A stretch of 64,000 nucleotides of DNA from contig NC_088810.1 of NCBI RefSeq assembly GCF_011386835.1, positions 10,354,001 to 10,418,000 of the forward strand, written 5' to 3'. Below the pieces are notes generated by a model, which had not been told where the DNA came from, did no database searches, and was given only the letters and a program-made list of their open reading frames with translations. The translations under genes were made by a program, and so were the position numbers. Positions 802 to 53,040 of the stretch are shown here, one piece after another. How positions within the stretch are numbered: the first letter of the stretch is position 1; the number at the start of each line of letters is the position of its first letter. Source of the DNA: Chrysemys picta bellii (lineage: Eukaryota).

Positions 802-2260
802 TTGGTACAAAATATACATACTATGGCACATCTCTTAAATCAGAGCTTTTTATAGGGATCCGGTTGCTAAGAAATGAAAGGCTTTTTTTTACATTTTTTT
901 TTAAGTCATCCCTGCCGGGGCCCTGCCGAAAATGTTCGAATTGGGCCCCGCACTTCCTAAAGCCGGCCCTGCAGCTAGGCACCGGGGTGGAGTGTGCCAG
1001 CGAGGCCCAGACAGATGCGGCTGAGTGAGCTGATCTCCGGCCTGGGCAGCCGTAGGGAAGCCACTGGGGGCTTCAGTGCCATTGACTGCAGGGATAACGC
1101 CGACATGCTTCATTTAGTGCTCCTGACAGTAAGTCCAGTGATTCGCTGTCACTTTGTGAGGGTGGGAGTGGGGTTGTCACAGCTGTAAATATTTTCAAAG
1201 GGGGCCCAGCCCTAAACGTTGGAGAACCCCTGCTCTAGAATGGGTTTTAAACCACCAGACGCCCTTTAGGACAGTAACATTTTCCATCTAGTTCCCTAGG
1301 CCGGAGCGTCTCAGCTCACCATCGTCCCAGAATCCCCCTCCTACCTAGTCTCGGATTCAGGTACGATGCCCTGAATTTAAACACCTGACAGACTCTAGCA
1401 ATTGTTGGGGAAGTTACTGTCTTTGAGCTCCGCTCTAGCTCAACTCCCAGATCTGGGCTGGAGCAGAAAACCCTGAGGTAGGTTCTCCAGCCGGGGCCGG
1501 ACACAGAGTTGGTCGGAAAGCTTTTGATAGAACCGTTTTCCATTGGAAAAGGCCGTTTTGTCAAAATTAAAATCTTTGGTGGGGACGTGTTGGTTTTGGA
1601 TGGGAAAAGTCTAAATGAATTATTTTGACATTCTCATTCTGGGCGCTATTCCTGGCCTTCTGGCTGAGTCCCTTTCTGTGACTCAGTTTCCTCCTGTGTA
1701 CAATTGAGGTATTGATACTGACCTTTCTGAGGCGCTTTGAGATCTACAGATGAAAAACACCATCTAGAGGGGAAGGATGGCCCAGTGGTTGTTGGGCACT
1801 AGTCTGTGACTTGGGAAACTCAGGCAATTCTCTGCTACACAACAGACTTCCTGTATGGGCTGGGGCAAGTCACTTTAGGCACCTAGCTTCCCTTGAAATC
1901 AGTGATGTTGCCTGAGTCTGCAGAGAGCCTGAGCCAATTGCTCTGAAATCAATGCAAGTTACGTGCTTAAATACCTGTGAATTTCTAGGCCTCAATTTCC
2001 CCATCTGTAGAATGGGGATAATAGCCCTGCCCTATCCCCAGATGTGGTGGAAGGATAAAGACATTAATGAAGCCAGAAGCGCTTTGAGCTCTACTAATGA
2101 AAAGCACTGTGTAAGAGCTAGAGATCATTTATTGTGCTGGCTTTAATGGCGCTGGGCTAAGTCACGCTAGATGGGAGCTGATCCCCACGGCCTTATTTTT
2201 ACAAGTAATGGTAACTTGCAGCTTGGTCTGGAGTCGTCTGAGCGGCTGATTCTCCTCCGG

Positions 2261-2926
2261 CTATGGCAGCATGCAGGTGATCTTCATGATGGTTTTGGAA
2301 TACTCATGGGAGGCTGGCTTGAACTCGTCCACCAGCGGCTGAAGCTCCCGAATCACTGTCTCCAGTTGGTCTCTCTCTATGCCGCCCAGGATCGCGCTGA
2401 AAATCAAGTCGACACCCACACCCAGGAGTGCACCAACAAATATGGCGCCGACAATGGAGGAACCGACCTTGACCACGAGCGTCATCATTTTGCTCATGAC
2501 GCTGGTCGTCACCTTCGATGACACCAGCTTGATTAGGATCCCCAACGCTAACCCAGTGAAGCCGCTCACCCCCTTGGCCCAATTGTGGAGAATCTGCATC
2601 TTCTTGGCATCAGGCTCCTGGAAATCGTGAAGCTTTCGGTAGAGATCTGGCTCCAGTTCGCTCTTCAACCTTGCATCGATGGCCTGCAGCGTGTCTTGGA
2701 TGGACTGTATGGCTGCGAGGAGTACGTCGCAGTTCTCCCGGACGGTGCCGTTCTTGTTCATCTTAATGGGGTGCAACTCGCAGTGACAGTGTGTGTTTAA
2801 GGCTTTAATCAGATCGTTGGTGGTATCAAAATTGAGCTCTATGCAGTTGATCAGGTCCTGGTGTAACCGCACCACCTCCTCCCGCCTCGCTGGGTTGCCA
2901 GGGTACAGGATATCGCTCCAGGACAT
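2261..2926 (-). CDS. SMCO3: SMCO3-like protein A (221 aa), single coding exon
   Basis: Intact ORF. MSWSDILYPGNPARREEVVRLHQ..LN.H...GTVRENCD...LEPDLYRKL matches the recalled SMCO3 pattern ([20 protein letters not shown]...GTIKENCD...LEPTLYRKL). Acceptor cctctcctggcAG at 2938-2939, 11 nt before ATG; AATAAA at 2128-2133 (-). A paralog, not necessarily the SMCO3 ortholog. Confidence 0.88.
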   Translation of the reverse strand: MSWSDILYPGNPARREEVVRLHQDLINCIELNFDTTNDLIKALNTHCHCELHPIKMNKNGTVRENCDVLLAAIQSIQDTLQAIDARLKSELEPDLYRKLHDFQEPDAKKMQILHNWAKGVSGFTGLALGILIKLVSSKVTTSVMSKMMTLVVKVGSSIVGAIFVGALLGVGVDLIFSAILGGIERDQLETVIRELQPLVDEFKPASHEYSKTIMKITCMLP

Positions 2927-4177
2927 TCTCGAGAGAGCTGCCAGGAGAGGAAGAGGAAGGAGGCGTTAGTAACCCTCCCCACTGCACACACACCCCCGTG
3001 CAAATCACAGACTTAGCCAGTGCAGAGACTCAGCTGCCATTAAAACAAAAAAGTCTCCAGGGCTCCGATCCCCAAAGGTCTTTAGGTGCCTAATTCCCGT
3101 CAGTCCGTGGGAGTTCTGCGCCTAAACACCTTGGAGGTTCTAGGGAGGAAGGACTCGGCCAGTGGGTCCCGCACCCCCGAAAGCGTCACACCCCAAACCA
3201 CGGGGTCTCGGGAGGAAAGTGCCGCGAGGACCCAGCCAGAGCCTCCAGCTGGGAGAGGGAGAATCCGCCCAGCAACCTCGGGGCTCTCAGCCCCGCTCCC
3301 CAACAGACCCTCAATGGCCAGAGATCCCCCTCGCCCCCGCAGTGCCCCAGCTACTGCCCCAGACACCCCCACTTCTCCCCCCACGTTACCTCCCCACATT
3401 CCCCCGATCTCTGTCCCAGCACCCACCCCCTGCACCCCAACACCTTCCAGCACCCCGAACCATCCACCCAGGAGCGCGGCAGCATCCCCCATCTACCCGG
3501 CCACCTCCTGCCCCAGCCGCGGAGCTGCCCAGTTCCCGGCAGTTGCATGACTTGCTCCCTCCCCCCTGCTGCCCGGGGGGCCCAGCTGTGGGGCAGAAGC
3601 TGCCGTTTCTGGCTGTCTGCAGATTAGCCCATGAAGTAATTTGCTCAAAACGCCAGGCCTGGAGCTGGTCGCAGCTGGGCAGCTTTGTTCTGGCTTCAAG
3701 GGGCACCTGGGGATAGTTTCATTTTTTGCCTCCTCCCCAGAGCTGGGCGCAGTCTCTAGTCAGGGTCTCCCGCTATCCGGAGGGGATCCCACCTCCCGGC
3801 TCCCACTCGCTATTCACCCGTTTCCCCAGCCCAGGGTCGCGCTCACCCGCTTGGCCACAGCATCCCCTGGGGCGCTCACGGGCAGCTGGTTCCACAGGAC
3901 ACCTGGGTCCTTCCCAGAGCTGCAGCTCGCCAGGGTCCCACTTTGGAAAGCAGAACTCCCTCCCCCGCATCGGTTACAGACAGGGCAGCTCCCCCCTCTC
4001 ACAGCGACCCCCCCCCAGTCTGTGGGTGACCGATGTTCTTTGTCCCTAGACATGGCACCTTGCCAGGGGCTGCATGAATCCCCTGTTGTTGGAGGAGCCC
4101 AGTTCGCCAAGCGATCCGGGGGCTCTCACTGCACGACCCCTGCTCCGATTCGTGTCTCCGCCGATGGGGCGAGTTAC

Positions 4178-4324
4178 CTGCTCGCTGGGCGGGGGGGAAG
4201 CCGAGGGGCCGTTCGCCTGGGCAGAGGTCAGCTCGGGTCCGCGGGCAGCAGCCTGGGCTCTCCGGAGAGGATCCCTTTGCTGTGACGCTCCCCGCACGCC
4301 GGAGCAGGGACTCTCGCCTTTATA
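4178..4324 (-). promoter_or_regulatory. TATA box and non-coding exon 1 of gene A
   Basis: TATAAA at 4319-4324 (-); donor CAG|GTAACT with the intron starting at 4177; both conserved in the mirror copy (51186, 51333). Confidence 0.7.
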
Positions 4325-4752
4325 GGAGGCTGGTCCTTGCTGTCACTTCCCAGTCAGCCGCCGAGATCCCATTGGCAGACCCGGAGCCAGCTGTGGTCAG
4401 GAGCGCGGTGCCAGTGGATGTCACATGGGCCTTCAAGTGGCTGCTTCGTGCCTGCGGCTTCCAGTTCCCCGCGTGGTTTCCAGGAACTCGAGTCTGGCTG
4501 GTTTCCAAGCCCCCGTTTGCGCCTCAGTCACGAGGGGCAGAAAGATCCAGGATCGAATCAATCCATGAGCCCGGCCGGGCCCCCGCTGCGAGCGCCTCCT
4601 GCTGGCAGTGCCCGGGGGAATTGCTACCCCGCCCTTTGGCTTGTGCCAACTTCCCCTTTCTCCCCTAACGGGAGCTTTATAAGGAGAGGCGGAGAGCCGG
4701 TGTCGTTCGCTCCTTCGCCCACCGGGACAGCAACCGCGCCGAGGAGCTACAG
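4325..4752. promoter_or_regulatory. Bidirectional promoter between genes A and B, plus non-coding exon 1 of gene B
   Basis: GAS consensus TTCCAGGAA at 4478-4486; ATTGG near 4372; TTTATAA at 4676-4682 (+); donor CAG|GTGAGA at 4753; CpG-rich. Confidence 0.6.
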
Positions 4753-6361
4753 GTGAGAGCCCCCGACCCCACCGATCGGGTCGGAATCGACGCGGGATAC
4801 GGCTCGGGGCTGAGTCCTTTCGCTTCGGCCTTTATACGCCACCAAACAGCCCTTTAAATCCCGTCCCCCGGGATACAGACCAGCTGCGCGCAGCCGGCGC
4901 ATTGCACCCTTAGCCACAAGAACCTGCTTCCAGCGGGGGGGGGGGGGGGGGGGGGACGGACGCAAACTTTTATGGCTGGGCCGGGCCCCCTTTGAAAATA
5001 GTTCAGGCTCTGACGACCCCACCACATGCCCCACAAGTGTTAGCAAATCACTGGGCAGAGAGGAGAACTGAGTGAAGCCTCTAATCGCCATCCCTGCATC
5101 AACGGCGCTGAAGCCCCAGTGGGCATCGCTGGCGCCCTCCACCCCGGTGCCTGCCTGCTCTCTTCGGCTGGGCTGGTAGGAGCCTGCATTGGCTTCAGCT
5201 CTGTCCTCGTCTCTCTGCCCGGGTGCAAACTCTCCTCCTACGGCCCTGCTTCGCACTTCCGCTGCTGAGCTGCAATACAATGAAACCTCGTCCTGCCCGA
5301 GCTGTGGGGTGCTGCTGCCCGTGCCCCTGTGCTGCTGCCGGCGGCGGCACTGCCCCCAGAGCTGGGCGGCTGGAGAGCTGAAACCCCTCCCCGGCAGAGT
5401 CCTCGAAATATGGTACCTCTAGAGCTCGTGATCCCCCTACAACAGCCTCGCACCCCCTTCTGGGGCCGGCCCCCTAGTTTCAGAAACACTGACTGGGGAG
5501 TTTCCGAAATGATCTTCTTCAGCGGGCACAGATCACTTCCACCCGGCGTCATCACTGATCCACACCCACGCATCCAGCTGCTGCCCCAGTCTTGGGGACC
5601 CTGGGGACCCTCTCCGGGTGCAGCCCTGCCGAGAGCTGGAACCCCCAGCCAGCCGCCGGCCCCCGGGGTGCAATGCAGCCCTTGAGGGTATGTCTGCACT
5701 GCAACTAAACCCCTGTGGCTGGCCTGCCGGGCTGCAGACTAGCAGTGTAGACGTGCAGGCTTGGACTGGAGCCCAGGTGGTGGGACTGTGCCTGGGGGGT
5801 TGGTCCCAGAGCCCGGGCTCCAGCCTGAACCCAGATGTCTGCATGGCAATTTTTAGCACCCCAGCCTGAGTCAGACCAGATGCCGCTGTTCCACGGGGCT
5901 TTTAGTCCAGTGTCGACGGACCTGAGACTCCCCCGTCACTTCGACACTCCCTGTCCCCGGACTCCACCCCAATGGCGCGCTGCCTCTGGTTCGCAGTGTC
6001 GCTCTCTTGGGGCCCGCAGTAGCTGCAAAGTGGGTAACGGACTGACGTGCTTTGCACACCCCATCTAGCACAGCAGTGCCCCTGTACCTCACCACCGCCA
6101 TTCTGGCTCTCCTCATTAGCCATATAAACGTCAGATCCCTTTCTGGGTCTTGCTAGACTCTCTGCATCAGCAAGATCATGAGGCCGTGAGTTCCACAGGT
6201 AACTCCCAGGGTTGTTGTGAAATAGCATTCCCTCTACTCCATTTCATAGGGGCTCCCTGTCGGTTCCATTGCACATCCCCTTGGCCTTGTGCTGGGGATC
6301 CTGGAGGGGAAACTCTTTAAGCTCCTCACCTGCGCTCTCTGCTTTGTTTCCCAGCCTCGTG

Positions 6362-7195
6362 ATGCTGTCCCTGTTCTCCGGCACAGAGAGCGAAAGAGAG
6401 AGGCTCGTGCGCGCCAGCCAGTCCCTGCTCAACTCCCTGGAAGGATGCATCTCAGGCACCCACGCTCTGCTCCGCATCCTCAACCAGCACCTTGACACCA
6501 GCGTGTCCCTGGAACCAGTGGGGGGCAGCGTCGGCGTGGGGGAGAACTTGGAGCGCCTGCTGCGGGCGGCGTGGGAGATACACGCCGCAGCAGAGCAGAC
6601 GGACAGACACGTGCGGAAGAACACCAGCCGGGACCTGTACGCCCGCATGGCCTCCCCCCACACCTCACTGCAGGAGAAGGGGGCCATCGTCCGGGACTTC
6701 CACCAGGCCACCATGGGGATCTTCGGCAGCGTGGGTGGCCCCATGGTGGCCGTGCTACTGCAGAACGCCGGCCTCCCGGAGCGGCTGGAGGCGGCTCTGC
6801 GGGAGTTGGAGGCCTCCCCGGTCCTGCACCTGCCGATGGACGCCCTGCGCCAGAGCAGCAAGGAGATCGCCAGGGCTGTGTCCGCTTGTGCCACCCCTGG
6901 GGGCCCAACTGTGGAAACGGCTGCAGAGCCCCCCGAGAATGGCCCCTTCTCTGGGACCGGCGTGGTGCAGAGTCTGGGCGAATACCTGCCCGATGTCCTC
7001 ACGGGGCGTCGTGCTAGGAACGCCCTGGCAGCGGCCGCTGGGCACCTGGAGGAGGCGCTTCGGGCACTGGCACCGGCCTGCAAGTCTTTCCAGTTGGCGG
7101 CTGCCGCGGCTGAGGTCTACATGGCCCTGATCACGGAGCAGCAGCCGGGAACGGGAGAGGGGCCGGGCCAGAATCCTGCCGGCGTCGCCCATTGA
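6362..7195 (+). CDS. Divergent SMCO3-family protein B (277 aa), single coding exon
   Basis: Intact ORF; acceptor tttgtttcccAG at 6353-6354, 7 nt before ATG; AATAAA at 7329-7334. ERERLVRASQSLLNSL..T..LLRILNQHL...GENL..LL.A..EI...TD......DLY aligns to the N-terminal helices of gene A. An intact paralog is at 45306-46139. Confidence 0.8.
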   Translation: MLSLFSGTESERERLVRASQSLLNSLEGCISGTHALLRILNQHLDTSVSLEPVGGSVGVGENLERLLRAAWEIHAAAEQTDRHVRKNTSRDLYARMASPHTSLQEKGAIVRDFHQATMGIFGSVGGPMVAVLLQNAGLPERLEAALRELEASPVLHLPMDALRQSSKEIARAVSACATPGGPTVETAAEPPENGPFSGTGVVQSLGEYLPDVLTGRRARNALAAAAGHLEEALRALAPACKSFQLAAAAAEVYMALITEQQPGTGEGPGQNPAGVAH

Positions 7196-10100
7196 TCCAT
7201 GCAGGCAGAGCCGTGACAGCGCCCCCTCACCACAGCTCACGCACGGGCAGGCTTTGCCCCGGGCTCTGCGCTGGTTAACGAGCCCGGCAGAGCCCAGCAT
7301 GTGGGGCTGGCAGCCGGGAACCGCAGCTAATAAAGGGAACTGAGCAAAACCCCAGGCCTGAGTCTTACTGGTTTGTCCCGGGTGGCGTGCTGGCCCAAGG
7401 GCCTTAGAACGAGACTCCCCACCCGGCCCCTGGGGAAAATCAGGAGTAACTTGGGGAGAGGGGGGAGCAATGGGGCCAATTCCCCTCTCTGATGTAAATC
7501 AGGAGTAACTCCATTGATGTCAAAGGGCCAATTCCCTTTCACTCTGGTGTAAATCAGGTGTAACTCGGTGGGGGGGAGGGATCAATAACCTGAACCACAA
7601 ACGAACTGGTTACGGTTATTTTTCCTGCAATTTTTTTGTGTGGGGGCGTTTGCTGAAAAAACAAAATAATAAAAAAATCCATTTTCAAAACCCTTTTCTG
7701 GTAAAAATAAAAACCCAGGTGGTGGTTTGGGTTGAAAGTTTGTGGTTTCGGTTTTTTAAAAACTTCCTTTAAAAAAAAAAAAAAAAAGAATTGAAAACCT
7801 GATTTTTCTTTGTTACTTCAAAACTGACACGTTGGTCCCAGCTTTGGTTCCAGGGTTTTCCCGGGTTTTGCAAACTGCCTCATTTCATGTGCAAACAGGG
7901 AGCCCAGATCCCCCGATATCAGGGGCTTTGTCTGGGAACCCCCAGACCGGGCAGGACGCGGGGTGGCCAGGGCTGGGTGTGAGTCAGAGCTCATTCCCCA
8001 GCGGGCTCTCAGGTCTGGGCGTTGACCCGGCCCGTGGTACTTTGGGCTGGGCTGGGCCAGAACCCACCCGCCCGCAGGGCCCCAGGGTGCAGCAGGGGGC
8101 TCCGGAGTCGCACTGCAGTGGAACCAGCAGCAGGGAACAGATGCTGGGGTCAGGGAGCCACAGGTCCGGTGCTCTGGGACAGTCGCTGGGGGGGCTGTAC
8201 AGGGGCCAGCCCCCCCTTAGGGTCTCACTCTGTCGCCAGGGGAAGCCACTTGGCTTCACCACCTCCTGGGACCCTACCTCGGTGCTTGCAGTCCCCTCCC
8301 TGCAGCGACTCCACCTGAGACGGACTTCTAAGGGAGACGTGTACCCCCAAAGGGGGCACTGCCCCCAGCATCTGCTGGGGCTCCCAGCCGGTGGGGGAAG
8401 GGCAGGCGGGTTTGTTAGGTGGCTGCACCCAGCATGGCCTGTCCTCAGTCAACCAGAGAGCCGGAAGCTACAGCCTGGTCCATGGGCAGCTCCGGGCCCC
8501 AGCCAAATATGTCCGACCTTGGCTCCCGCTCTTCCAGCTGGCTTCCTGCAAGGGGTGGGGGGGAGTCACCCTGGGCGTTAGTTGCTAGATCGGCAATGTC
8601 CCGGCAGGTTGGCTTTGCCATTGTCTTCATGGACTCGCCAGCGTCACGGGCCCCAAATCAAGACAGGCAGGATCAGCCGCCCCTGGGTGGTAGCTTGCCC
8701 TAGAGAAAACAGCCCTTTCCAGCCCACAGGGGCCAGCGTGGCACATAGGGGAAACTGAGGCACAGACAGTCTTCATACAAAATAATGCAGACACTTCCCA
8801 CTGCGCTACTCTGTGCAGGTGCAACCTGAGACTCACAGGAAACGCATGTGAGCAGAGCTCCCACGACTGCCAGCTGGCATGGACATAGCCACGGGACTCA
8901 GTAACTCCCCTGCCCCCATGTATCTTGGGTGTGGGGCAACACGCGCGCACACACACACACACAGAGCAGGGCTCATCCCCTCCAGCAGACACACATGCAC
9001 ACACACATACAGCACCTCTATGTCCAAGGGGTTCCTACGTGCATCAGATAAGCCCCCAACCCCCCCTCCCTCCCAGAGATTCCCTCATGTGACTGGGGTA
9101 TGTGCCCCAGCCTAAGTGGTGTCTAATGGTTAGAGCAGTGGGGGCTGGGAGCCAGGACACCTGGGTTCTGTCCTGGCTCTGGGAGGGGAGGGGAGTGGGG
9201 TCTAATGCTTAGAATACGGGACTGTGCACCAAGACTCACTGCAGCCGGAGGGTTTTTGGCAGTTCTGCCAGGGTCATTACACGTTTGCAGGCCCATCTTC
9301 CAGTCCCTGCCCGGCCCACTCGCCCTATCGGGTGGCAATGAGGAGGCACCGGGCACCTGATGGTTGGGGGAGAGGAGAGGGGAGGAGATCGGAGGCCCAG
9401 GATCAGGACCCAAGCCCAAGTTTCCACCTCTGGCTTGTTGGCTCTGGGCCAGGGCCCAGCCTCTCACCTACATTCCCTGCCATTCCCCTGCACTGGACCC
9501 ACAGCTTGAAGTCTTGGGATTCCCCAGCCTGGCCCCAGGTGCTCCGTACGCTGGCTGGAGTCACTCTGGGGTAAATCAGGAGTAAAGCCATGGGGACCGA
9601 TTCCTTTCGCCCTCACCTGGGGGTAAATCATTTCTGTAGTTCTTCTCAGAACCCTCCCCAATTGTCGAATGTCCTGTTTGACATGTGGCTCCCCCGCCCA
9701 CCCCAGAGCTGGGCGTGGTTTCCAGTCAGGGTCTCCCCCATGCTGTATCCAGAGGGGACCCCACCTCCCAGCTCCTACTCTCTAATCCCCTGCTTCTCCA
9801 GCCCAGGGCCGTGCTCCTCCTCTCACCCAGGGAGCTCTGGTCCAGTGGGTTCCACCAGGATCTCTGGGTCCTTCCCGCATTGCTGCCTTCCAGGGTGCAG
9901 CCCCCCACCATGTAACTCCTACCAATATCAGTTGTGTCCCTCTCTTAGCCAGTGTACTGGGCGCTCATGGTGGGTTGATTCTCCTTGAAAATCTACCGAT
10001 TTGTCCCATGTCACAAGAGGAGTCCGTGGTGGATTCGAACCCAGATCTCCAAATGGAGGCTGGCCATTATCAAAGAGTCTGTAGCACAAGTAGGGATATT

Positions 10101-10779
10101 AATGACTTACGTTTATGGGCAGTGCTATGGCCAGTGGGAGATGCCACCCCTTAGACTGCACAATCATTGGGAGACGCCAACTCTCAGAGTGTTCGGCCAT
10201 TGGGTAGAGCGCTTGGCCGTTGGGGGAGACGCCACAGCTCTCTGAAGCTCCTTTCATCAACCGTGGGTGCCAAGAAAAGTTGATTTGGCACCAACCATTG
10301 GGGATCTGCCAAGCGACACGTCTAAGCCTTGCTCCTGTACCCGATGTGACCCCCACGCTACGGGAATGACGCTGGGCGAAATGAGGACAACCCACCAATA
10401 GCAGGTAGTTAGGCCGGGGAAGGAAGGACACTTTCTGCAGCCCAGAAACCCTGCTCTCTGGCTGGGAGGGAGTTAAATGCCAGAGGATGTTGGGAGAAGG
10501 ACGAGGAGGGGAAGGATCGGTCTGGATGCGCCATTAACGTGGGCGGAGATTGGGGGAGAGCCTGGGGACCACGGCCCCCCAAACTGGATACGACCCACAG
10601 GCGACGTGTGGAGAGGCACCTAGATTTCTCCCTGGCAGTTGGTCCTGCTCCCTCCCCACAAAGGAACATTGGGATGGGTGGTGGGGAGGTGATGCCAGGA
10701 GCTTTGTCCCTGCTGGTCAGTTCCCCCCTGGGCTGGGAACAGGGAGGGCAGCAGAGCAGTGACCCGCGGCAGAGCTCCA

Positions 10780-14600: not shown

Positions 14601-14606
14601 GACTTT

Positions 14607-20060: not shown

Positions 20061-20061
20061 A

Positions 20062-40960: not shown

Positions 40961-41764
40961 TACCGCATTCACAGAGCCAAATGTGCCGTCGCGGCGCATT
41001 CTGCATGAGGGAGAGAGTACGGGGGTCTCTGCGGGGAACTGTGACTCTCCACCACCGTGAGGCAGGCTGGGAGTCTGGGTATCCTTTGCTGCCTCATCCC
41101 TCCCCACCAGGCTGCGAGCCCGGGCTGTGGTCGGGCATAGGGGCACCAGTTTAATAATACTGTGTAGGGCCCCAGAAATCCTAAGGATGGCCCTGGCACT
41201 GCCCATGAACATAAGTCGATAACATCCCTACTTGTGCTACAGACTCTTTGATAATGGCCAGCCTCATGTTTAGAGATCCAGGAGATCTGGGTTTGAATCC
41301 ACCAGGACTCCTCTTGTGACCTGGGACAAATCATTAGATTTTCAAGGAGAATCAACCCACCATGAGCGCCCAGCGCACTGGCTAAGAGGGGTACACAATT
41401 CATGTGGGTAGGAGTTACATTGTGGGGGGCTGTACCCTGGAAAGCAGCAATTTGCGAAGGACCCAGAGATCCTGGTGGAACCCACTGCGTTGGAGCTCCC
41501 AGGGTGAGAGGGCGAGTACGGCCCTGGGAGGGAGAAGCAGGAGATTAGAGAGTAGGAGCTGGGAGGTAGGGTCCCCTCTGGATACAGCATGTGGGGGACC
41601 GTGACTGGAGACTGCGCCCAGCTCTGGGCGGGACCCACACATCAAACAGGACAGTGGACAATTGGGGAGGGTTCTGAGAAGAGCTACAGAAATGATTTAC
41701 CCCCAGGTGAGGGAGAGGGGAATCGGCCCCCGTGGCATAGGGACTGGGAGTGGCTGGCTTATTA

Positions 41765-42063
41765 CAGAAGCGGCTTTTCCTCTCCTGGAATTGACACCTC
41801 CTCATCTATTATTGGGAGTGGACTACATCCACCCTGATTAAACTGGTCCTGTCAACACTGGTTCTCCACTTGTGAAGTAACTCCCTGCTCTCCATGTGCC
41901 AGTATATAATGCCTGCATCTGGAACTTTCACTCTATGCACCCGAAGAAGTGAGGTTTTTACCCACGAAAGCTTATGCCCAAATAAATCTGTTAGTCTTTA
42001 AGGTGCCACCAGACTCCTTGTTGTTTTTGTAGATACAGACTAACACGGCTACCCCCTGATACT
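41765..42063 (+). mobile_element. Penelope 3' end fragment
   Basis: cacgaaagcttatgcccaaataaatctgttagtctttaaggtgccaccagactcc...cacggctacccccctgatact; absent from the left arm near 9575. Confidence 0.8.
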
Positions 42064-45000
42064 ATTTACCCTAGGTGACTTCAGCCAGCGTACGGAGCAC
42101 CTGGGGACAGGCTGGGGAATCCCAAGACTTCAAGCTGTGGGTCTAGCGCAGGGGAATGGCAGGGAACATGGGTGAGGGGCTGGGCCATGGCCCAGAGCCA
42201 ACAAGCCAGAGGTGGACACATGGGCTTGGGTCCTGATCCTGGGCCTCAGATCTCCTCCCCTCTCCTCCCCCCAACCATCAGGTGCCCGGTACCTCCACAT
42301 TGCCACCCAATAGGGCGAGTGGATCGGGCAGGGACTGGAAGATGGGCCCGCAAACAAGTAATGACCCTGGCAGAACTGCCCAAAACCCTCCGGCTGCAGT
42401 GAGTCCTGGAACACAGTCCCCTACTCTAACCACTAGACCCCACTCCCCTCCCCTCCCAGAGCCAGGAGAGAACCCAGGTGTCCTGGCTCCCAGACCCCCT
42501 GCTCTAACCATTAGACACCACTTCACCCAGCAAGCTGGGGCACATACCCCAGTCACATGAGGGGAATCTCTTGGGGGGTTGGCGGCTTATCTGATGCACA
42601 TAGGAAACCCTTGGACAGAGAGGTGCTGTGTGTGTGTGTGTGTGTGTTCCCTCACACCCAAGATACATGGGGGCGGGGGAGTTACTCAGTCCCATGGCTG
42701 TGTCCATGCCAGCTGGCAGTCGTGGGAGCTCTGCTCACATGCGTTTCCTGTGAGTCTCAGGTTGCACCTGCATGGAGTAGTGCAGTGGGAAGTGTCTGCA
42801 CTATTTTGTATGAAGACCGTCTGTGCCTCAGTTTCCCCTATGTGCCACGCTGGCCCCTAGGGGCTGGAAAAGGGCTGTTTTCTCTCAGGCAAGCTACCAC
42901 CCAGGGGCGGCTGATCCTGGCTGTCTCAATTTGGGGCCCGTGTTGCTGGCGAGTCCATGAAGACAATGGCAAAGCCACCCTCCTGGGACATTGCTGACCT
43001 AGCAACAAACGCTCACGGTGATTCCCCCCCGCTTGCAGGAAGCCAGCTGGAAGAGCGGGAGCCAAGGGCAGACGCGCTTGGCTGGGACTCGGAGCTGCCC
43101 ATGGCCCAGGCTGTAGCTTCCGGCTCTCTGGGCTGACCGAGGACTGGCCATGCTGGGTGCAGCCATCTAACAAACCCGCCTGCCCTTCCCCCACCGGCTG
43201 GGAGCCCCGCAGATGCTGGGGGGGGGGGGGCAGTGCCCCCTTCGGGGGTACACATCTCCCTCAGGTGTCTGTCTTAGGCAGAGTCGCTGGAGGGAGGGGG
43301 CTGGAGGCGCTGAAGTTGGGTCCCAGGAGGCGGTGAAGCCAAGTGGCTTCTCCTGGTGACAGAGCGAGACCCTAAGGGGGGGGGGGGGCTGGCCAGCTGT
43401 AGGGCCCCCCAGGGACTGTCCCAGAGCACCGGACCTGTGGTTCCCTGACCCCAGCATCTGTTGCCTGGTGCTGGTTCCGCTGCAATGCCCAGTCACCCAG
43501 TTTTGTGAGATCCTTTTGTAGCTAGCTAGAGGGAGTATATGGGAATAGATAGATATTTAAATGATGGCTTCAACCATTTGGCAACGGGGACATTTTGGGT
43601 TCAAATGGTGGGTGTTCCATTAAAAATATTAGTTTCCAAAAACTTGAATAAATGGCGGGTGGGCCAGGATCTTCTTAATCCTTCCCTCCCGCCATTGGCC
43701 AAACACAAAAATGGTGGTGGGGGGGGGTGACCCAACAAGCGGAAGGAGAGTGGGAGGGAGAGGGGGGCAGAGCGGAAGATTGGGGGAGCGGGATGGGGAC
43801 AGCACGGGAGATTTGGGGAGTGGGATGGGAGATTTGGGGAGGAAACTCTGGCAGAAGTGGGGGCAGAAGGCAGGAGCCTGGAGCGAGGGAAGTGGGCATC
43901 CGAACCAGGAGCTGCTTGAAGCAGATGCCATGTAAACACCTGGCCTGGGACTGAAACCACAGAACAGGCCCACCAGGGCGAGCTGCCAGTGCATGGCAGG
44001 GTGGGGGGCTGCATTGGTGGGGGAGAGTCTTTGTGGGTCAAGCCAAGGGACGGGGGCTGCATGCTGCGGGGGGAGGGGGTCTGTGTAACCCCCACTGGAG
44101 CGCCTGAGCCGGTCTTGGCCTGTGTTAGGCCCATGCAGTGCTACTGTTATGGGGCGGGTGAGCCAGGGGTTCACACTCCCTCCCAAGGAGGGAGAGTTGG
44201 GTTTGTGCAGAGGTGGGGGGCCGGGATCTGGGACCCCCCCCCACGCCCCAGGACCCCCCAGCTGACACAGGGAGTTGGGGTCCTTGGAGAGCATGTTTTG
44301 GGGGTCAGTTCAACGGGGCTGTTGGCAGGTCACATTTTTGCTTGGCAGGTAGGGGACCAGGGCGGGAGTGTGAACAACGGGACACTTGTTTTGGGGGACA
44401 GATGGTGGGGAGGTTTAGTTGCCTGTCTAACACCAAGCCCCTAATATCTGGACGTCTGGGCTCCCTGTTTGCACGTGAACAGAGGCAGTTTGCAAAACCT
44501 GGGAGAAAACAGGAACCAAAGCTGGGGCGAATGGGTCCTTTACGAAGTAAAAAGGAAAAATCAGGTGACAGTTTTCAAACTTTTTTCGTTTGTTTAAAAA
44601 AAAAAGGGAAATTTTAAAAAACCGCAAATCACCAACTTTAAACCCAACCCTGCCCCCTCAACCTGTTTTTCTTTTACCAAAAAAGGGTTTGGAAAATTAA
44701 CCTTTTTGTTCTTTTGTTTTTTCAACGCCCCTCCTCCCCCACCCCCCCAAAAAAAAAACCCAGCAGGAAAAGCAGTAACCATTTGTGGCTAAGGTTTTTG
44801 TTTTTCAGTTAAAACCCAGTAGGTTTCAGTGTTTTAAATGTGGCAGGAGAATAGTCGTTGCTTTTCTTCCCCATTTTAACCAAAAACGTGAATGTTTTGT
44901 TTTATCTGAACCCAAAAATCATTTTTGAAAATGGCATTTTTTGAATTACTCCTGATTTACACCAGGGTGAGTGAGGGGGAATCGGCCCCATTGACTCCAG

Positions 45001-45305
45001 TGGAGTTATTCCTGATTTATACCAGAGAGGGGAATCGCTCCCCACCCCGAGTCACTCCTGATTTTCCCCAGGGGCCGGGCGGGGAGTCTGGTTCTAAGGC
45101 CGTTGGGCCAGCACGCCAGCCGGGACAAACCAGTAAGACTCAGGCCTGGGGTTTTGCTCCGTTCCCTTTATTAGCTGCGGTTCCCGGCTGCCAGCCCCAC
45201 ACGCTGGGCTCTGCCGGGCTCGTTAACCAGCGCAGAGCCCGGGGCAAAGCCTGCCCGTGCGTGAGCTGTGGTGAGGGGGCGCTGTCACGGCTCTGCCTGC
45301 GCAGG

Positions 45306-46139
45306 TCAATGGGCAACCCCGGCAGGATTCTGGCCCGGCCCCTCTCCCGTTCCCGGCTGCTGCTCCGTGATCAGGGCCATGTAGACCTCAGCCGCGGCAG
45401 CCGCCAACTGGAAAGACTTGCAGGCCGGTGCCAGTGCCCGAAGTGCCTCCTCCAGGTGCCCAGCGGCCGCTGCCAGGGCGTTCCTAGCACAACACCCCGT
45501 GAGGACATCGAGCAGGTATTTGCCCAGACTCTGCACCATGCTGGTCCCAGAGAAAGGGCTATTCTCGGGGTGCCCTGCAGCCGTTTCCAAAGTTGGGCCC
45601 CCGCAGGTGTCATGAGCAGACACAGCCTTGGCAATATCCTCGCTGCTCCGGCGCAGGGTGTCCATTGGCAGGCGCAGCACCGGGGAGTCCTCCAACCCCC
45701 GCAGAGCCGCCTCCAGCCGCTCCGGGAGGCCGGCGTTCTGCAGCAGCACGGCTGCCATGGGGCCACCCACACTGCCGAAGATCCCCATGGTGGCCTGGTG
45801 GAAGTCCCGGACGATGGCCCCCTTCTCCTGCAGTGAGGTGTGGGGCGAGGCCATGCGGGCGTACAGGTCCCGGCTGGTGTTCTTCCGCACGTGTCTGTCT
45901 GTCTGCTCTGCTGCGGCGTGCATCTCCCACACCGCCTGCAGCAGGCACTCCAAGTTCTCCCCCACGCCGACGCTGCCCCCCACTGGTTCCAGGGACACGC
46001 TGGTGTCAAGGTGCTGGTTGAGCATGCGTAGCAGAGCGTGGGTGGCCGAGATGCATCCTTCCAGGGAGTCGTGCAGGGACTGGCTGGCGCGCACGAGCCT
46101 CTCTCTTTCACTCTCTGTGCCAGAGAACAGGGAGAGCAT
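45306..46139 (-). CDS. Divergent SMCO3-family protein B' (277 aa), paralog of 6362-7195
   Basis: Intact ORF of the same length as B; ~30 aa differences (~89% identity); acceptor AG at 46147-46148; AATAAA at 45167-45172 (-). Confidence 0.78.
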   Translation of the reverse strand: MLSLFSGTESERERLVRASQSLHDSLEGCISATHALLRMLNQHLDTSVSLEPVGGSVGVGENLECLLQAVWEMHAAAEQTDRHVRKNTSRDLYARMASPHTSLQEKGAIVRDFHQATMGIFGSVGGPMAAVLLQNAGLPERLEAALRGLEDSPVLRLPMDTLRRSSEDIAKAVSAHDTCGGPTLETAAGHPENSPFSGTSMVQSLGKYLLDVLTGCCARNALAAAAGHLEEALRALAPACKSFQLAAAAAEVYMALITEQQPGTGEGPGQNPAGVAH

Positions 46140-47179
46140 CACGCGGCTGAGGAAAAAAGCGGAGAGCGCAGGTGAGGGGGCAAAAGCGGTTCCCCACCTG
46201 GATCCCCAGTGCAAGGACAAGGGGGGTGCAAGGGAACTGACAGGCAGCCCATTTGAAATTGAGTAGAGGGAATGTTGCTTCATATAATCCCAGAATTTGT
46301 CTGTGGAACTCACTGCCACATGATCTTGCTGAAGCAAGAGCCGAGCAAGACCCAGAAAAGGGATGTGACATTTATATGGCTAATGAGGAGAGCCAGAATG
46401 ACATTAGAGAAGAATTGTTTTTTAAGTTTGAAAAGATTAAACACTCTCATGCTCCAGGGCATGAACCCACCTCTAACTAACTGCTGTAAGAAAGGAACTG
46501 TCCCTATGGTCAGAATCTCCCTAACCTGCTACTGCGGAGTTCATTTGGTACCGTCACTATCAGAGACAGGACACAGCACAAAGGGCCTCTGGGCTGAGCC
46601 TGTCTGGCCAGTCTGATGGTCCTACTTATACATAAAAAAATGTTTTCCCGCTGCTCTTCCTGATTTCAATGCACTGAAAGCGCCCAGACAAAGCCAGAAA
46701 GGTCCCAGGCTTCATAAGAAAGCTGGCAGCTTTTGTGTCTCCAGCTCAGGCATCTTTTGAACAAGTTTCTGTGCACAGAGGAAAGAATAAAGCACCACAA
46801 ACTTGCCACAGCGAGTTCTTTCCTGCCGCTCGAAAGCGCTGGGGGGCGATTCCCAAAGCACCCACCAGCATTGTCTTCACTACTGAAAGAAGGGCCCCGA
46901 CTTTCAGAGGTATTTCAGCTCCTAACTCCCTTTGGAATTGACAGAAATCAGGAGCCGAAATCCCCTGAAGCTGACAGGGCGAGTTCGGTGCGGGGGAGCC
47001 AAGGGGTCTCTTGTATTTTCATTGTGACAGTTCTGGCTTCCGTCCCCAGCACCCGGAGTCTCAGGAGGACGGGGAATTCCTGGCTACCTGGGCTTGTGGC
47101 CCTGCCAACATAGAGAAATGCCGGGCACGGCAGCTCCTGGAGGCCCAGATGCTAGGAAGCTACTAGGCTCAGCCCCGCA

Positions 47180-49255
47180 CGTGGTGTCAGAGAGAAGGCT
47201 TTGGATTCTTTGACCATGGGATGGTGTTCCAAGAGGGAGGAGTGCTAGGCAGAGACAGGCTCCACTTAACGAAGAGAGGGAAGAGCATCTTCGCAAGCAG
47301 GCTGGCTAACCTAGTGAGGAGGGCTTTAAACTAGGTTCAACGGGGGAAGGAGACCAAAGTGGGGAAGTGGGATACTGGGAGGAAGCACGAGCAGGAGAGT
47401 GCAAGAGGGGAGGACTCCTGCCTCATACTGAGAAAGCAGGATGATCAGTGAGTTATCTTGAGTGCCTATACAGAAATGCAAGAAGCCTGGGAAACAAGCA
47501 GGGAGAACTGGAAGTCCTGGCACAGTCAGGGAACTATGATGTGATTGGAATAACAGAGACCTGGTGAGATAACTCACATGACTGGAGTACTGTCATGGAT
47601 GGATATAAACTGTTCAGGAAGGACAGGCAGGGCAGAAAAGGTGGGGGAGTTGCGTTGTATGTAAGAGAGGAGTATGACTGCTCAGAGCTCCGGTATGAAA
47701 CTGCAGAAAAACCTGAGAGTCTCTGGATAAAGTTGAGAAGTGTGAGCAACAAGGGTGATGTCGTGGTTGGAGTCTGCTATAGACCACCAGACCAGGGGGA
47801 TGAGGTGGACGAGGCTTTCTTCTGGCAACTAGCAGAAGTTGCTAGATCGCAGGCCCTGGTTCTCATGGGGGACTTCAATCACCCCAATATCTGCTGGGAG
47901 AGCAATACAGCGGTGCACAGACAATCCAGGAAGTTTTTGGAAAGTGTAGGGGACAATTTCCTGGTGCAAGTGCTGGAGGAACCAACTAGGGGCAGAGCTT
48001 TTCTTGACCTGCTGCTCACAAACAGGGAAGAATTAGTAGGGGAAGCAAAAGTGGATGGGAACCTGGGAGGCAGTGACCATGAGATCGTCGAGTTCAGGAT
48101 CCTGACAGGATCCTGTAGTGCCCATCTTTAAAAAAGGGAAGAAGGAGGATCCGGGGAACTACAGGCTGGTCAGCCTCACCTCCGTCCCTGGAAAAATCAT
48201 GGAGCAGGTCCTCAAGGAATCAATTCTGAAGCACTTAAAGGAGAGGAAAGTGATCAGGAACAGTCAGCATGGATTCACCAAGGGCAAGTCATGCCTGACT
48301 AACCTAATTGCCTTCTATGACCAGATAACTGGCTCCACGGATGAGGGGAAAGCAGTGGATGTGTTATTCCTTGACTTTTGCACTAAACTGGGAGGAGTGG
48401 TAGATATGCTGGAGGGTAGGGCTAGGATACAGAGGGACCTAGACAAATTAGAGGATTGGGCCAAAAGAAATCTGATGAGGTTCAACAAGGACAAGTGCAG
48501 AGTCCTGCACTTAGGGTGGAAGAATTCCATGCACTGCTACAGACTAGGGACCGAATGGCTAAGTAGCAGTTCTGCAGAAAAGGACAGAGGGGTTACCGTG
48601 GTCGAGAAGCTGGATATGAGTCAACAGTGTCCCCTTGTTGCCAAGAAGGCTAATGGCATTTTGGGCTGTATAAGTAGGGGCATTGCCAGCAGATCGAGGA
48701 ACGTGATCATTCCCCTCTATTCGACATTGGTGAGGCCTCATCTGGAGTACTGTGTCCAGTTTTGGGCCACACACTACAAGAAGGATGTGGAAAAATTGGA
48801 AAGAGTCCAGCGGAGGGCAACAAAAATGATTAGGGGTCTGGAGCACATGACTTATGAGGAGAGGCTGAGGGAACTGGGATTGTTTAGTCTGCAGAAGAGA
48901 AGAATGAGGGGGGATTTGATAGCAGCCTTCAATTACCTGAAGGGGGGTTCCAAAGAGGATGGAGCTCGGCTGTTCTCAGTGGTGGCAGATGACAGAACAA
49001 GGAGCAATGGTCTCAAGTTGCAGTGGGGGAGGTCTAGGCTGGATATTAGGAAAAACTTTTTCACTAGTAGGGTGGTGAAGCACTGGAATGGGTTCCCTAG
49101 GGAGGTGGGGGAATCTCCTTCCTTGGAGGTTTTTAAGGTCAGGCTTGACAAAGCCCTGGCTGGGATGATTTAGTTGGGAATTGGTCCTGCTTTGAGCAGA
49201 GGGTTGGACTAGATGACTCCTGAGGTCCCTTCCAACCCTGATATTCTATGATTCT
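47180..49255 (+). mobile_element. CR1 LINE (end of ORF1, endonuclease, RT pieces, 3' UTR) with two internal deletions, in the presumed intron of B'
   Basis: EN motifs ([20 protein letters not shown]); jump at ~48105 to PIFKKG; FLDF joined to TKLGG at ~48378 removes the FADD core; ATTCTATG tail. Confidence 0.93.
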
Positions 49256-50114
49256 TTCTTAAAATCGGTTTTCAGCCGCTCTCATGATTTTTCCTTAACC
49301 TCAGGCAGTGAGGGGCTGCCCAGAGCCAGGGAAGGAGCTGGAGCAGGCCCCACTATATCCAGGAGTCCAGTGGGTACGGCACTGGGCCGGGAGTCAGAGC
49401 GGCCGGGTTCTCTTGTCAGTTCTGTCATATGGACATTGGGGAAACAACCCTCCTTTCTCTGCTGACCCACCCGGCCTTTGTCTGTCTTCTCTCTTTGCAC
49501 TGTGAGCCATTCAGGACAGGGTCTGTCTCTCGCTGTGTGTGGGCAGCGCCTGGCACAACGGGGCCCTGATCTCAGCTGGGGCAGGGACTGTCTCTGGCTG
49601 TTGATGAAGAATTGGGTATCTCAGATCTGCTTGTACATAGATATACATATATATTTTAAATAAAAGAGCACGGTCAATTAAAGAATCCTGGCTGTCCCAC
49701 AGTCCCTCATTCCCAGGTGCGAGGTGCCTCCTTCCCAGGGTGACTCCCCCGCCTGGCAGAGGCCAGCGGTGGTGATGTACACAGCGGCACTGCTGTGCTA
49801 GAGGGTGTGCAAAGTACATCAGTGTGTTACCCACTTTGCACGTGCCATGGGCCCCGAGAAAGCGACACTGCGAACTGAAGCAGTGTACCATGTGGGAGGT
49901 CCTGGCCCTCCACAGCCAGCCCAGACTGGGGGAGGAGGGGTCCCAGCCCAGCCCTCTGCAGCCAGCCCAGACTGGGGAATCTGGCTACAAATCAGAGAGG
50001 GGATGGTAAAGGGAGCTCTCACCTGCAAGTCTGCTGTCCTGGCAGGCTGAAGGAGCAGACGATGCCTGACTCTCTGCTTCTAAAGTTCCAGTTAGGTGAG
50101 AAAGTGAGAGTTGG

Positions 50115-50321
50115 TGTAAAGCCGACAGACCCCGGTCGTCAGCAGGTGGGATCGAACCTGGGACCTCTGGCGCTTAGTGCATGGGCCTCTACAGCATGAG
50201 CTAAAAGCTACGTGACTGTCCGCTAAGGCAGTAGAGAAGGATCATTTTCTCTCTCTCGTTAAGTGGTCTTGGTGCCACTAGATGGGCCAGACCACCACAC
50301 CCAGGAGGTGGGTGGGTTACA
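50115..50321 (-). mobile_element. 207-bp TGTAA...TTACA element containing a tRNA-like Pol III A/B box
   Basis: The reverse strand reads tagctcatgctgtaga...ggttcgatccc; inverted pentamer termini. Confidence 0.55.
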
Positions 50322-50889
50322 TGGCACAAGCCAAGCCGCACATCAAGCTGCCCACGGCTGGCATCGGAGGGCTAAAAGGGGAAGTTGTTCTGGCCCTGAC
50401 CGTGTTACCCTGACTCAGCTGACTCCAGCCCTGGGGGGTCCTTCTGCTAATGCCCCAAGGGGACGCTCCATACAGAGACCTGCAGCCAACTATCGCTGCT
50501 GCTCCAGAGGAGTTGGTTGATTCTCTGCCTAAGCACCAGCCTCCACTCCCCTCCCAGAGATGAGGAGAGAACCCAGGAGTCCTGGTTCCCAGCCCCGCCC
50601 CCAGCAGACCCCACTCCCTTCCCCTCCCGCAGCTGGGGAGGGAACCCCGGGGCGCTGACTCTGACTCGCCGCCTTTCACCTCTCTCCCTGTCCGGTTCCG
50701 CGATGGGAGAAGCCTGGAGCCGCCCTCCATGGAGGCTGGATGGACTCGGAGGGGTGCTGCCGGAAGCAATTGTCCTGGGCAAGGCCAGCTGCAGGTGCCT
50801 GCAGGCGGGACCCAGCCGGGGCTCGCTGGATCTTTCTGCCCCGCGTGACTGAAGAGGAAACAAGGTCTTGGAAACCAGCCAGACTCGAG

Positions 50890-51332
50890 TTCCTGGAAAC
50901 CACGTGGGGAACTGGAAGCCGCACCCCAGTGGCTTCACCCTGGGTGTGGGCTCCCTTAGCAGTCCGCAGCGTTTGCATCTTCCAGCAGCCTCCTGCGAGC
51001 CGAGCGATCCCACTCACCCCCTTCCCCAGAGAGCAGCGGGGGCGTCTTTCGCGGGTTCCTTGAGCAACAGCTGGGTCCCAGTAGCAGCCTCTTTAAGGCC
51101 AAGGCGACGTCCATTGGCACCGTGCTCCTGCTGCCCACCGCTGTCTGCCAATTGCCCCATCCTAGCCAGCACGGATCAGCTCTCCTATAAAGGCGAGAGT
51201 CCCCGCTCCGGTGTGCGGGGAGCGTCACAGCAAAGGGATCCTCTCCGGAGAGACCAGGCTGCTGCCCGCGGACCCGAGCTGACCTCTGCCCAGGCGAACG
51301 GCCCCTCGGCTTCCCCCCCGCCCAGCGAGCAG
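50890..51332 (+). promoter_or_regulatory. Promoter and non-coding exon 1 of gene A'
   Basis: GAS TTCCTGGAA at 50890-50898; TATAAA at 51186-51191; donor AG|GTAACT at 51333; acceptor AG at 51725-51726. Confidence 0.7.
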
Positions 51333-51737
51333 GTAACTCGCCCCATCGGCGGAGGCACGAATCGGAGCAGGGGTCGTGCAGTGAGAGCCCCCGGATCGCT
51401 TGGCAAACTGGGCTCCTCCAACGACGGGGGTTTCATGCAGCTCCTGGTAAGGAGCCCCATCTAGGGACAAAGAATATCAGTCACCCCCAGGCTGGGGGGG
51501 GGTTGCTGTGAGGGGGGACCTGCCCCGACTGTAACCGATTGACCTTTGGTCTGACCCAGTAGGGCCATTCTTATGTTCTTATGTTAAAGACCTTTGGGGA
51601 TCGGAGCCTGGAGACTTTTTTGTTTTAATGGCAGCTGAGTCTCTGCACTAGCTAAGCCAGTGATTTGGGGAGGGGGCACAGTGGGGTGCGCTGGCTAACG
51701 CCTCCTTCCTCTTCCTCTCCTGGCAGCTTTCTCGAGA

Positions 51738-52430
51738 ATGGCCTGGAGCGATATCCTGTACCCTGGCAACTCAGCAAGGCGGGAGAGGGTGGTGCGGTTA
51801 CACCAGGAGCTGATCAACTGCATAGAGCTCAATTTTGATGCCACCAACGAGCTGATTGGAGCCTTAAACACACACTGTCAGTTCAAGTTGCACCCCATTA
51901 AGATGAACATGAACGGCACCGTCCGGGAGAACTGTGACATATTCCTCGCAGCCATGAAGTCCATCCAAGACACGCTGCAGGCCATCGACGGAAGGTTGAA
52001 AAGCCAACTGGAGCCAGACCTCTACCAAAAACTTCATGATTTCCAGGAGCCTGATGCCAAGAAGATGCAGATTCTGCGCTCTCTGGCCAAGGGGGTGAGC
52101 GAGTTCACTGGGACCATGGCCATGAAGTTTTTCATCAAGCTGGTTTTATCGAAGGTGATGAGCAAAGCTATGAGCCAAATTACCATGATCTTGGCCGAGA
52201 TCGGTGCCTCCGTGGTTGGCGCCGTGGCTGGCATGATACTGGGCGTGGGTGTCGACTTGATTCTCAGCGCGATCCTGGGCGCCATAGAGAGAGACCGACT
52301 GGAGACAGCGATTCGGAAGCTCGAGGCGCTGGTGAGCGAGTTCAAGCCAGCCTCCAAGGAGTATAACAAAACCATCCTGAAGACCATCTACACGCTGCCA
52401 TCGCCGGAGGAGAATCAGCCGTTCAGATGA
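51738..52430 (+). CDS. SMCO3: SMCO3-like protein A' (230 aa)
   Basis: Intact ORF, paralog of 2261-2926; ATTAAA at 52517 and AATAAA at 52531. Confidence 0.88.
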   Translation: MAWSDILYPGNSARRERVVRLHQELINCIELNFDATNELIGALNTHCQFKLHPIKMNMNGTVRENCDIFLAAMKSIQDTLQAIDGRLKSQLEPDLYQKLHDFQEPDAKKMQILRSLAKGVSEFTGTMAMKFFIKLVLSKVMSKAMSQITMILAEIGASVVGAVAGMILGVGVDLILSAILGAIERDRLETAIRKLEALVSEFKPASKEYNKTILKTIYTLPSPEENQPFR

Positions 52431-53040
52431 CTCCAGAGCAAGCTGCAAGTTACCATTACTTGTAAAAATAAGGCCGTGGGGATCAGCTCCCATCTACCGT
52501 GACTTAGCCCAGTGCCATTAAAGCCAGCACAATAAATGATCTCTAGCTCTTACACAGTGCTTTTCATTAGTAGAGCTCAAAGTGCTTCAGGCTTCATTAA
52601 TGTCTTTATCCTCCCACCACATCTGGGGATAGGGCAGGGCTATTACCCCCATTCTACAGATGGGGAAACTGAAGCCCGGAAATTCAAAGGTATTTAAGCA
52701 CTTAACTTCCATTGACCTCAGAGCAATTGGCTCAGGCTCTCTGCAGACTCAGGCAATGTCACTGGTTTCAAGGGAAGCTAGGTGCCTAAAGTGACTTGCC
52801 CCAGCCCATACAGGAATTCTGTAGTGTAGCAGAGAATTGTCTGAGTTTCCCAAGTCACAGACTAGTGCCCAACAACCACTGGGCCATCTTTACCCTCTAG
52901 CTGGTGTTTTTCATCTATAGATCTCAAAGCACCTCCAAAAGGTCCGTATCAATACCCCGACGGTACACACATGGAAACTGAGTCACAGAAAAGGGCTCAG
53001 CTAGGCCAGGAATAGCGCCCAGAATGAGAGTGTCAAAATA

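Follow-up and report, generated by a model that had tools for sequence, protein, structure and literature searches.

What are the two genes that diverge from each other near one end of a 64-kb stretch of the painted turtle genome, and do their products act together? The stretch (hereafter the window) comprises 64,000 nucleotides of Chrysemys picta bellii, positions 10,354,001 to 10,418,000 of contig NC_088810.1 (assembly GCF_011386835.1), and is vertebrate DNA without a single run of Ns. A first-pass annotation, made from the sequence alone, had described the two genes, here called A and B, as deeply diverged members of the SMCO3 family forming a candidate two-component membrane-active system. 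We consider it probable that the window holds the painted-turtle SMCO3–C12orf60 locus, in which two ancient paralogues of the DUF4533 family, a membrane-anchored A and a soluble B, lie head-to-head around a CpG-rich spacer and have been amplified.

Both genes proved to be intact and divergent, each with its coding sequence in a single exon as the first-pass annotation had described, and their start codons are separated by 3,435 bp (Table 1). Gene B begins at the first ATG (position 6362) of an open reading frame (ORF) that spans 6269–7195 on the plus strand. The splice acceptors that had been read 7–11 nt before each ATG were also found, in both cases as a polypyrimidine tract followed by cag, and polyadenylation hexamers lie downstream of both stop codons. 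These acceptor sites are kept in all four Chrysemys units described below and in the turtles Carettochelys and Emydura, the acceptor of A being identical across the four Chrysemys units and similar in Carettochelys. Outside turtles, the B genes of duck and cat have an acceptor-like site a little 5' of the ATG, and no obvious acceptor-like site was seen just before the ATG of duck A, lizard A or lizard B. Between the genes lies a CpG-rich block, partly conserved in the other units, that is a candidate shared promoter and may hold candidate first exons. Pairs driven by a bidirectional promoter have divergent transcription start sites within ~1 kb of each other in a CpG island; here the CpG-rich block falls inside the 3.4 kb that separate the two start codons.

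Both proteins match the Pfam family PF15047 (DUF4533) far above its gathering threshold of 28.6 bits (A, 78.7 bits, E = 6e-22; B, 73.4 bits, E = 2.6e-20), with B spanning positions 1–218 of the 225-position profile. Compared directly, A and B share 24% identity over 129 amino acids (BLASTP, E = 1e-10), and overall identity is only ~20–24%. When 26 SMCO3-like and 16 B-like proteins were aligned separately and the two profiles compared with hhalign, the match extended over 215 columns, from the N-terminal through the C-terminal helix, with a probability of 99.7% (E = 9e-27), and the mixed alignment of A and B proteins revealed invariant or near-invariant positions at R15, L39/L43, L95-Y96, G181, L188 and P204-A205 (A numbering). 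The alignment that had been made by eye at both ends of the proteins was therefore correct, and these comparisons identify B as a genuine, deeply diverged paralogue of SMCO3.

Turtle relatives of A carry the name SMCO3-like. For relatives of B the name is C12orf60-like in Emydura and Carettochelys, and C12orf60 homolog in duck, the lizard Sceloporus and cats. A maximum-likelihood tree covering 107 family members places B and its second copy B2 alongside the C12orf60 homologues of duck, Sceloporus and cat, in a 16-row clade that is monophyletic and strongly supported (SH-aLRT, the Shimodaira–Hasegawa-like approximate likelihood ratio test, 99). Fish members sit within this clade too, one from a sturgeon and one from a cyprinid, as does a protein encoded on a 1.9-Gb chromosome; the split between A and B thus predates tetrapods. 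By sequence and phylogeny, A and B are thus identified as the painted-turtle copies of the annotated genes SMCO3 (C12orf69) and C12orf60. The family as a whole is small: only 211 members emerged at E ≤ 0.001 when 1.84 billion representatives were searched exhaustively with a profile.

How new is such a pair? The first-pass annotation knew of no description of one. As a pair it is already annotated, SMCO3–C12orf60 being a conserved neighbour pair known from databases, and the locus is not a new kind of system; the claim stands for function, in that full-text literature searches for SMCO3, C12orf60, C12orf69 and DUF4533 returned gene lists and proteomics tables, among them a kidney proteomics table that lists human SMCO3 protein as detected, and no paper on function or on the relationship between the two. 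The window resembles the vertebrate locus in its head-to-head order and in having the coding sequence in a single exon, but differs in that the turtle carries several units and not a single one. In addition, turtle B is longer than other C12orf60 proteins (277 versus 244–262 amino acids) through a Pro/Ala/Gly-rich insert, and window A departs from SMCO3 orthologues in the unusual divergence of its membrane and C-terminal part. New here are the presence of at least four units in the turtle, the anomalous divergence of the 3' two-thirds of A, and homologues in bacteria and on giant-virus-like contigs.

The two proteins differ in their predicted relation to the membrane. Neither A nor B has an N-terminal hydrophobic segment fit for a signal peptide. 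Protein A is weakly hydrophobic at residues ~121–141 and strongly hydrophobic and Gly-rich at ~147–183; its 19-residue Kyte-Doolittle maximum is 2.41 (at ~158–176), and its main stretch of ~37 residues has a Gly-rich break and repeated small-xxx-small motifs. The corresponding maximum in B is 1.41, and a membrane segment of the SMCO3 type is found in A and not in B. The same separation runs through the family, SMCO3-like and bacterial members exceeding 2 and all B-clade members but one lying at 1.0–1.8; the hydrophobic hairpin has been lost across nearly the whole B clade.

AlphaFold2 models built from the 135-sequence family alignment were confident and all-helical for both proteins. That of A (mean predicted local distance difference test score, pLDDT, 82.5; predicted template modelling score, pTM, 0.81) has long helices at residues 11–47, 62–90 and 182–219, and that of B (pLDDT 87.1, pTM 0.81) has helices at residues 2–43, 59–87 and 216–260. 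The part of B that aligns with the hairpin of A consists of polar helices followed by a disordered, low-confidence Pro/Ala/Gly-rich insert (~178–210). Protein A would thus be built from an N-terminal helical bundle, a Gly-rich hydrophobic region of ~60 residues and a long C-terminal helix, and B would have kept the N-terminal and C-terminal helices while its hydrophobic region decayed to polar helices and a disordered insert. Because the N-terminal and C-terminal helices of A have homologues in soluble B and are modelled as parts of one confident domain, they are expected to share one side of the membrane, which would make the hydrophobic region a helical hairpin with both ends on one side and not a single pass; the database label of SMCO3 as a single-pass protein is probably wrong. 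Such a hairpin could serve as a monotopic or two-pass anchor with its small-xxx-small motifs, and the bundle would face the cytosol, given the absence of a signal peptide.

A long helical bundle with a Gly-rich hydrophobic hairpin had also suggested something more active, namely an alpha-helical pore-forming system of the ClyA/Hbl/YaxAB or apolipoprotein-L type, whose bundle hides a membrane-inserting hairpin and in which A and B would act as subunits or as effector and inhibitor. Several features invite the comparison: the model of A is elongated and all-helical, with the hairpin between long helices, the two genes of the conserved pair have been amplified together, bacterial family members exist, and HblL1, Hbl-B and MakA are among the top 50 Foldseek matches for B. 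The ClyA-family toxins (ClyA, Hbl, Nhe, YaxAB and MakA) likewise consist of a long helical bundle with a hydrophobic segment between long helices, as in A, and the tripartite members have paralogous components encoded side by side. However, Foldseek searches of the Protein Data Bank (PDB) with the AlphaFold models returned nothing at E ≤ 0.001 for either protein. The best match for A was a de novo designed bundle (E = 0.07, template modelling score, TM, 0.30), no ClyA-type fold being matched by A in this search, and the list for B was led by HblL1 (E = 0.098, TM 0.12), with Hbl-B (E = 0.21, TM 0.18) and MakA (E = 1.0, TM 0.20) also present, all at a root-mean-square deviation above 20 Å. Values such as these are typical between any long helical bundles and are not evidence of kinship. 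Nor did the model of A match anything in BFVD at E ≤ 0.001 (Foldseek). At the sequence level, Pfam searches at E ≤ 1 with A and B gave only DUF4533 and sub-threshold noise (Clostridium_P47, XRCC4_CC and SKA2), the ClyA, HBL and ApoL families being absent, and no sequence relative was found in the PDB. A profile search of the PDB with the family alignment returned spurious matches only, the best being AP complex sigma (E = 0.002, 72 residues).

The anatomy of the proteins argues in the same direction. The main hydrophobic segment of A (Kyte-Doolittle 2.4, ~37 residues) resembles a constitutive anchor, B has no hairpin or hydrophobic head at all, neither protein has a signal peptide or other secretion signal, and the bacterial homologues are solitary in housekeeping surroundings, where no gene for a second subunit, for secretion or for immunity was found close by. 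The helices of A and B measure ~30–45 residues; ClyA-type tail helices are much longer. Unlike the ClyA-family toxins, A and B are proteins of an animal, intracellular type. The pore-former reading is thus unsupported by any sequence, profile or significant fold match, and we regard it as very improbable. A second analogy is offered by bacterial dynamin-like proteins and mitofusin-type bundles with a membrane paddle, in which a hydrophobic hairpin likewise interrupts the bundle and returns the chain to the same side, and three bacterial family members weakly match the helical domains PF21808 or PF18709. These matches are, however, far below threshold (E 0.009–0.07, 13–16 bits versus cut-offs of 25–28), the family has no GTPase domain, and the vertebrate proteins show no such match.

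The pair has been amplified in the painted turtle. The second intact copy that the first-pass annotation had placed at 45306–52430 was found there in inverted orientation and consists of B2 and A2; the two arms that carry the copies are 86–94% identical at the nucleotide level. A tblastn search detected no DUF4533 gene in the 64-kb window beyond these two pairs. Two further head-to-head units were located on CM062337.1 (10.43–10.51 Mb), L007 at 10.43 Mb and L006 at 10.49 Mb, each consisting of an A-like gene and a DUF4533 gene in head-to-head order and each 92–97% identical in nucleotide sequence to arm 1 of the window. One Chrysemys picta bellii chromosome thus bears a cluster of at least four pair units, of which two lie inside the window. 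The pair has been duplicated whole on at least three occasions, both genes being present in each of the Chrysemys duplications examined. In the sea turtle Natator, several B-like proteins are encoded on one contig.

Table 1. Coordinates of the features of the window and of the bacterial homologues (bacterial rows are numbered within their own loci).
Feature	Position	Strand	Remarks
Gene A coding exon	2261..2926	minus	221 amino acids + stop; SMCO3-like DUF4533 protein with predicted Gly-rich hydrophobic hairpin at ~121–183
Gene B coding exon	6362..7195	plus	277 amino acids + stop; C12orf60-like DUF4533 protein without convincing membrane segment
Gene A polypyrimidine tract and AG acceptor	2938..2965	minus	11 nt upstream of the A ATG
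Gene B polypyrimidine tract and AG acceptor	6330..6354	plus	7 nt upstream of the B ATG
Gene A polyadenylation hexamers	2128..2147	minus	ATTAAA 2147–2142, AATAAA 2133–2128
Gene B polyadenylation hexamer	7329..7334	plus	AATAAA, 134 nt past the stop
CpG-rich intergenic block	3969..4900	no strand	GC 0.64–0.68, CpG observed/expected 0.63–0.91
Gene B2, second copy of B	45306..46139	minus	89% amino acid identity to B
Gene A2, second copy of A	51738..52430	plus	230 amino acids, 71% amino acid identity to A
Inverted segmental duplication, arm 1	1451..10133	no strand	carries the A/B pair; limits approximate
Inverted segmental duplication, arm 2	41188..54374	no strand	limits approximate
Long interspersed nuclear element (LINE) fragment	47595..49266	plus	interrupts the copy 2 spacer; has ORFs for endonuclease and reverse transcriptase
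LINE / DDE_Tnp_4 fragments	14606–15448, 19831–20067, 27818–28429, 40218–41006, 47595–49266, 59364–61250		
Bacterial homologue genes	10001–10873		loci L009/L010
Bacterial homologue genes	6001–~6880		loci L014–L019

Several LINE fragments and a DDE_Tnp_4 (Harbinger-type) transposase fragment fill the regions that separate and flank the duplicated arms. The LINE fragments, with their reverse transcriptase and endonuclease ORFs, are 79–94% identical to one another; the remaining long ORFs of the window belong to LINE or transposase fragments or lack a Pfam match. Two direct repeats of ~520 bp (34975–35497 and 37923–38441), 99–100% identical and 2.9 kb apart, could represent either a tandem duplication of very recent date or the long terminal repeats that bound a short element.

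Among the amplified copies, window A is exceptional. Between Chrysemys and Carettochelys, the ratio of nonsynonymous to synonymous substitution rates (dN/dS, omega) is 0.62–0.69 for A-type and 0.47–0.60 for B-type genes, and both are under weak purifying selection between species. Compared with A2 and with the A genes of L006 and L007, however, window A gives a dN/dS of ~1.0. Relative to unit L006, its flanks differ by 3.0% (5') and 6.6% (3') but its coding sequence by 13%, two to four times the divergence of its own flanks, whereas window B differs from the B gene of L006 by 2–3%. Differences private to window A with respect to L006 and L007 affect 72 of 660 coding sites versus 82 of 2703 flank sites (Fisher p = 6e-15). 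The excess is concentrated in ~440 nt covering codons ~90–221 (window positions 2264–2660), where synonymous divergence is also raised (0.21–0.30) with an omega of ~1. The first 89 residues of A reach 91% identity to their best match among the retrieved proteins, but residues 90–221 only 67%, and no donor above 67% identity for the diverged tract was found among all retrieved proteins. The tract may stem from a local burst of change, or from gene conversion by a diverged donor outside the sample.

These same values raise the question of whether some of the amplified copies, window A foremost, are drifting towards pseudogenes, so that only one or two units would be functional. An omega of ~1.0 against its three paralogues, a coding sequence that has outrun its flanks and the distance of residues 90–221 from any collected protein all fit this view. 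It sits badly with the intact ORF of 221 codons, with acceptor and polyadenylation signals identical to those of the other units, and with the retention in window A of the family-invariant residues N65, G181, E184, L188 and F202; moreover, the raised synonymous divergence is not explained by relaxed constraint alone. We therefore regard decay of window A as unlikely.

Is the pairing of the two genes older than the turtle amplification? Conserved head-to-head linkage was observed in Carettochelys, Sceloporus and duck. Carettochelys has an A-like gene on the minus strand 9.5 kb upstream of B on the plus strand, with a second A-like gene downstream. In duck, an A-like gene (4974–5651, minus) is followed by a B-like gene (10001–10783, plus) and then by WBP11, and in Sceloporus undulatus an A-like gene (2657–3340, minus) is followed by a B-like gene (10001–10789, plus) and then by a BGLAP_C/MGP-like gene. 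Human SMCO3 and C12orf60 are presumably divergent neighbours too. For a single locus at human 12p12.3, a genome-wide association study (GWAS) table lists ERP27, SMCO3, C12orf60 and MGP (PMC7844411). Whereas WBP11, MGP and ART4 neighbour the pair, or one of its genes, in the duck, lizard and cat loci, none of WBP11, MGP, ART4 and ERP27 occurs inside the 64-kb window.

Several observations weigh against our reading of a conserved pair with a membrane-anchored A and a soluble B. Tight adjacency is not universal: within 10 kb, Emydura has B without A, cat has C12orf60 beside ART4 with no SMCO3, and the cyprinid Garra rufa has an SMCO3-like gene (L001, 10001–10531) with no DUF4533 neighbour. The hairpin topology of A depends on a model whose hydrophobic part reaches a pLDDT of only 56–79; exon 1, the shared promoter and the co-expression of A and B are predictions; and window A, with an omega of ~1 against its paralogues, may be under relaxed constraint. 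Since the Garra rufa gene is unpaired within 10 kb and yet a cyprinid and a sturgeon have B-clade proteins, the head-to-head layout need not be as old as the duplication.

A and B could also be functionally independent, the head-to-head arrangement being a relic of an old inverted tandem duplication that was kept by a shared bidirectional regulatory region, with B in an unrelated soluble role. Besides the unpaired genes of Garra rufa, Emydura and cat, this is favoured by the loss of the membrane segment in nearly the whole B clade, fish members included, by the low identity between A and B, and by the fact that the bacterial homologues occur singly. The arrangement has nevertheless been retained in turtles, in a lizard and in a bird, and both genes were present in the Chrysemys duplications examined. 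Persistence and joint duplication are, however, equally expected from a shared promoter alone, a shared bidirectional regulatory region explaining the conservation of the pair equally well, and they are weak evidence against independence. We hold independence to be possible, if on the doubtful side. Functional coupling of A and B is a reasonable idea. In our preferred reading, A and B are probably co-transcribed from the shared spacer, and most likely A would act as a membrane-anchored scaffold and B as a soluble paralogue that binds the same partners or the bundle of A itself.

The family extends well beyond vertebrates. One clade of its members of 244–300 residues is bacterial, with representatives in gut Clostridia and in one Pseudomonas. 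It includes P0155, a hypothetical protein of an Oscillospiraceae metagenome-assembled genome (MAG) encoded on 55-kb contigs between true bacterial genes (GidA, BipA, MetK and radical SAM), and searches of GTDB species genomes added relatives in Candidatus Pelethomonas, Oscillibacter, Candidatus Harrysmithimonas galli, a Clostridiaceae isolate, a rabbit Oscillospiraceae MAG and Pseudomonas hunanensis BE56. The profiles of bacterial and SMCO3-like proteins align over 200 columns with a probability of 99.8% (E = 4e-30), although the Pfam DUF4533 model misses the bacterial homologues. Bacterial proteins such as MBR2421334.1 share with the SMCO3 family the N-terminal motif D-x-F-Y-P-x-N-P-x-R-R and, directly after the hydrophobic region, the motif D-x-I-x-S-A-I-x-G-A-x-E-R-x-x-L, but they differ in carrying an extra C-terminal extension of ~70 residues, in having no paired paralogue and in their variable neighbourhoods. 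No conserved partner was detected near them, whether a second subunit or a secretion, toxin or immunity gene, and a bacterial homologue gave no match in plasmid and phage collections. A further member, P0151, is encoded on metagenomic contigs with giant-virus hallmark genes (L022, 8001–8675; L023, 5919–6593), its neighbours being MutS with HNH, Rpb5, DNA ligase, U-box and calpain, and one member comes from a clam. Because members were found in bacteria, on giant-virus-like contigs and in a clam, the family appears to have moved between domains of life; this spread does not bear directly on the A/B pair.

These distant relatives also allow a bolder construction, in which SMCO3, with its hairpin, and soluble C12orf60 would form a heteromeric membrane-active or membrane-remodelling module whose core fold is shared with the solitary proteins of Clostridia, Pseudomonas and giant-virus-like contigs, and in which the turtle amplification and the change in the membrane part of A would be driven by conflict, either immune or reproductive. 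We consider this improbable.

For the biology of the family, C12orf60 is a membrane-less paralogue of SMCO3 that has stayed beside it in sauropsids and probably beyond. At the human SMCO3/C12orf60 locus there are GWAS signals for both grip strength and osteoarthritis (PMC7844411). Both SMCO3 and C12orf60 are among the remaining unstudied vertebrate proteins, and the bacterial relatives, with their two sharply conserved motifs, may make the function of the family approachable in a tractable bacterium.

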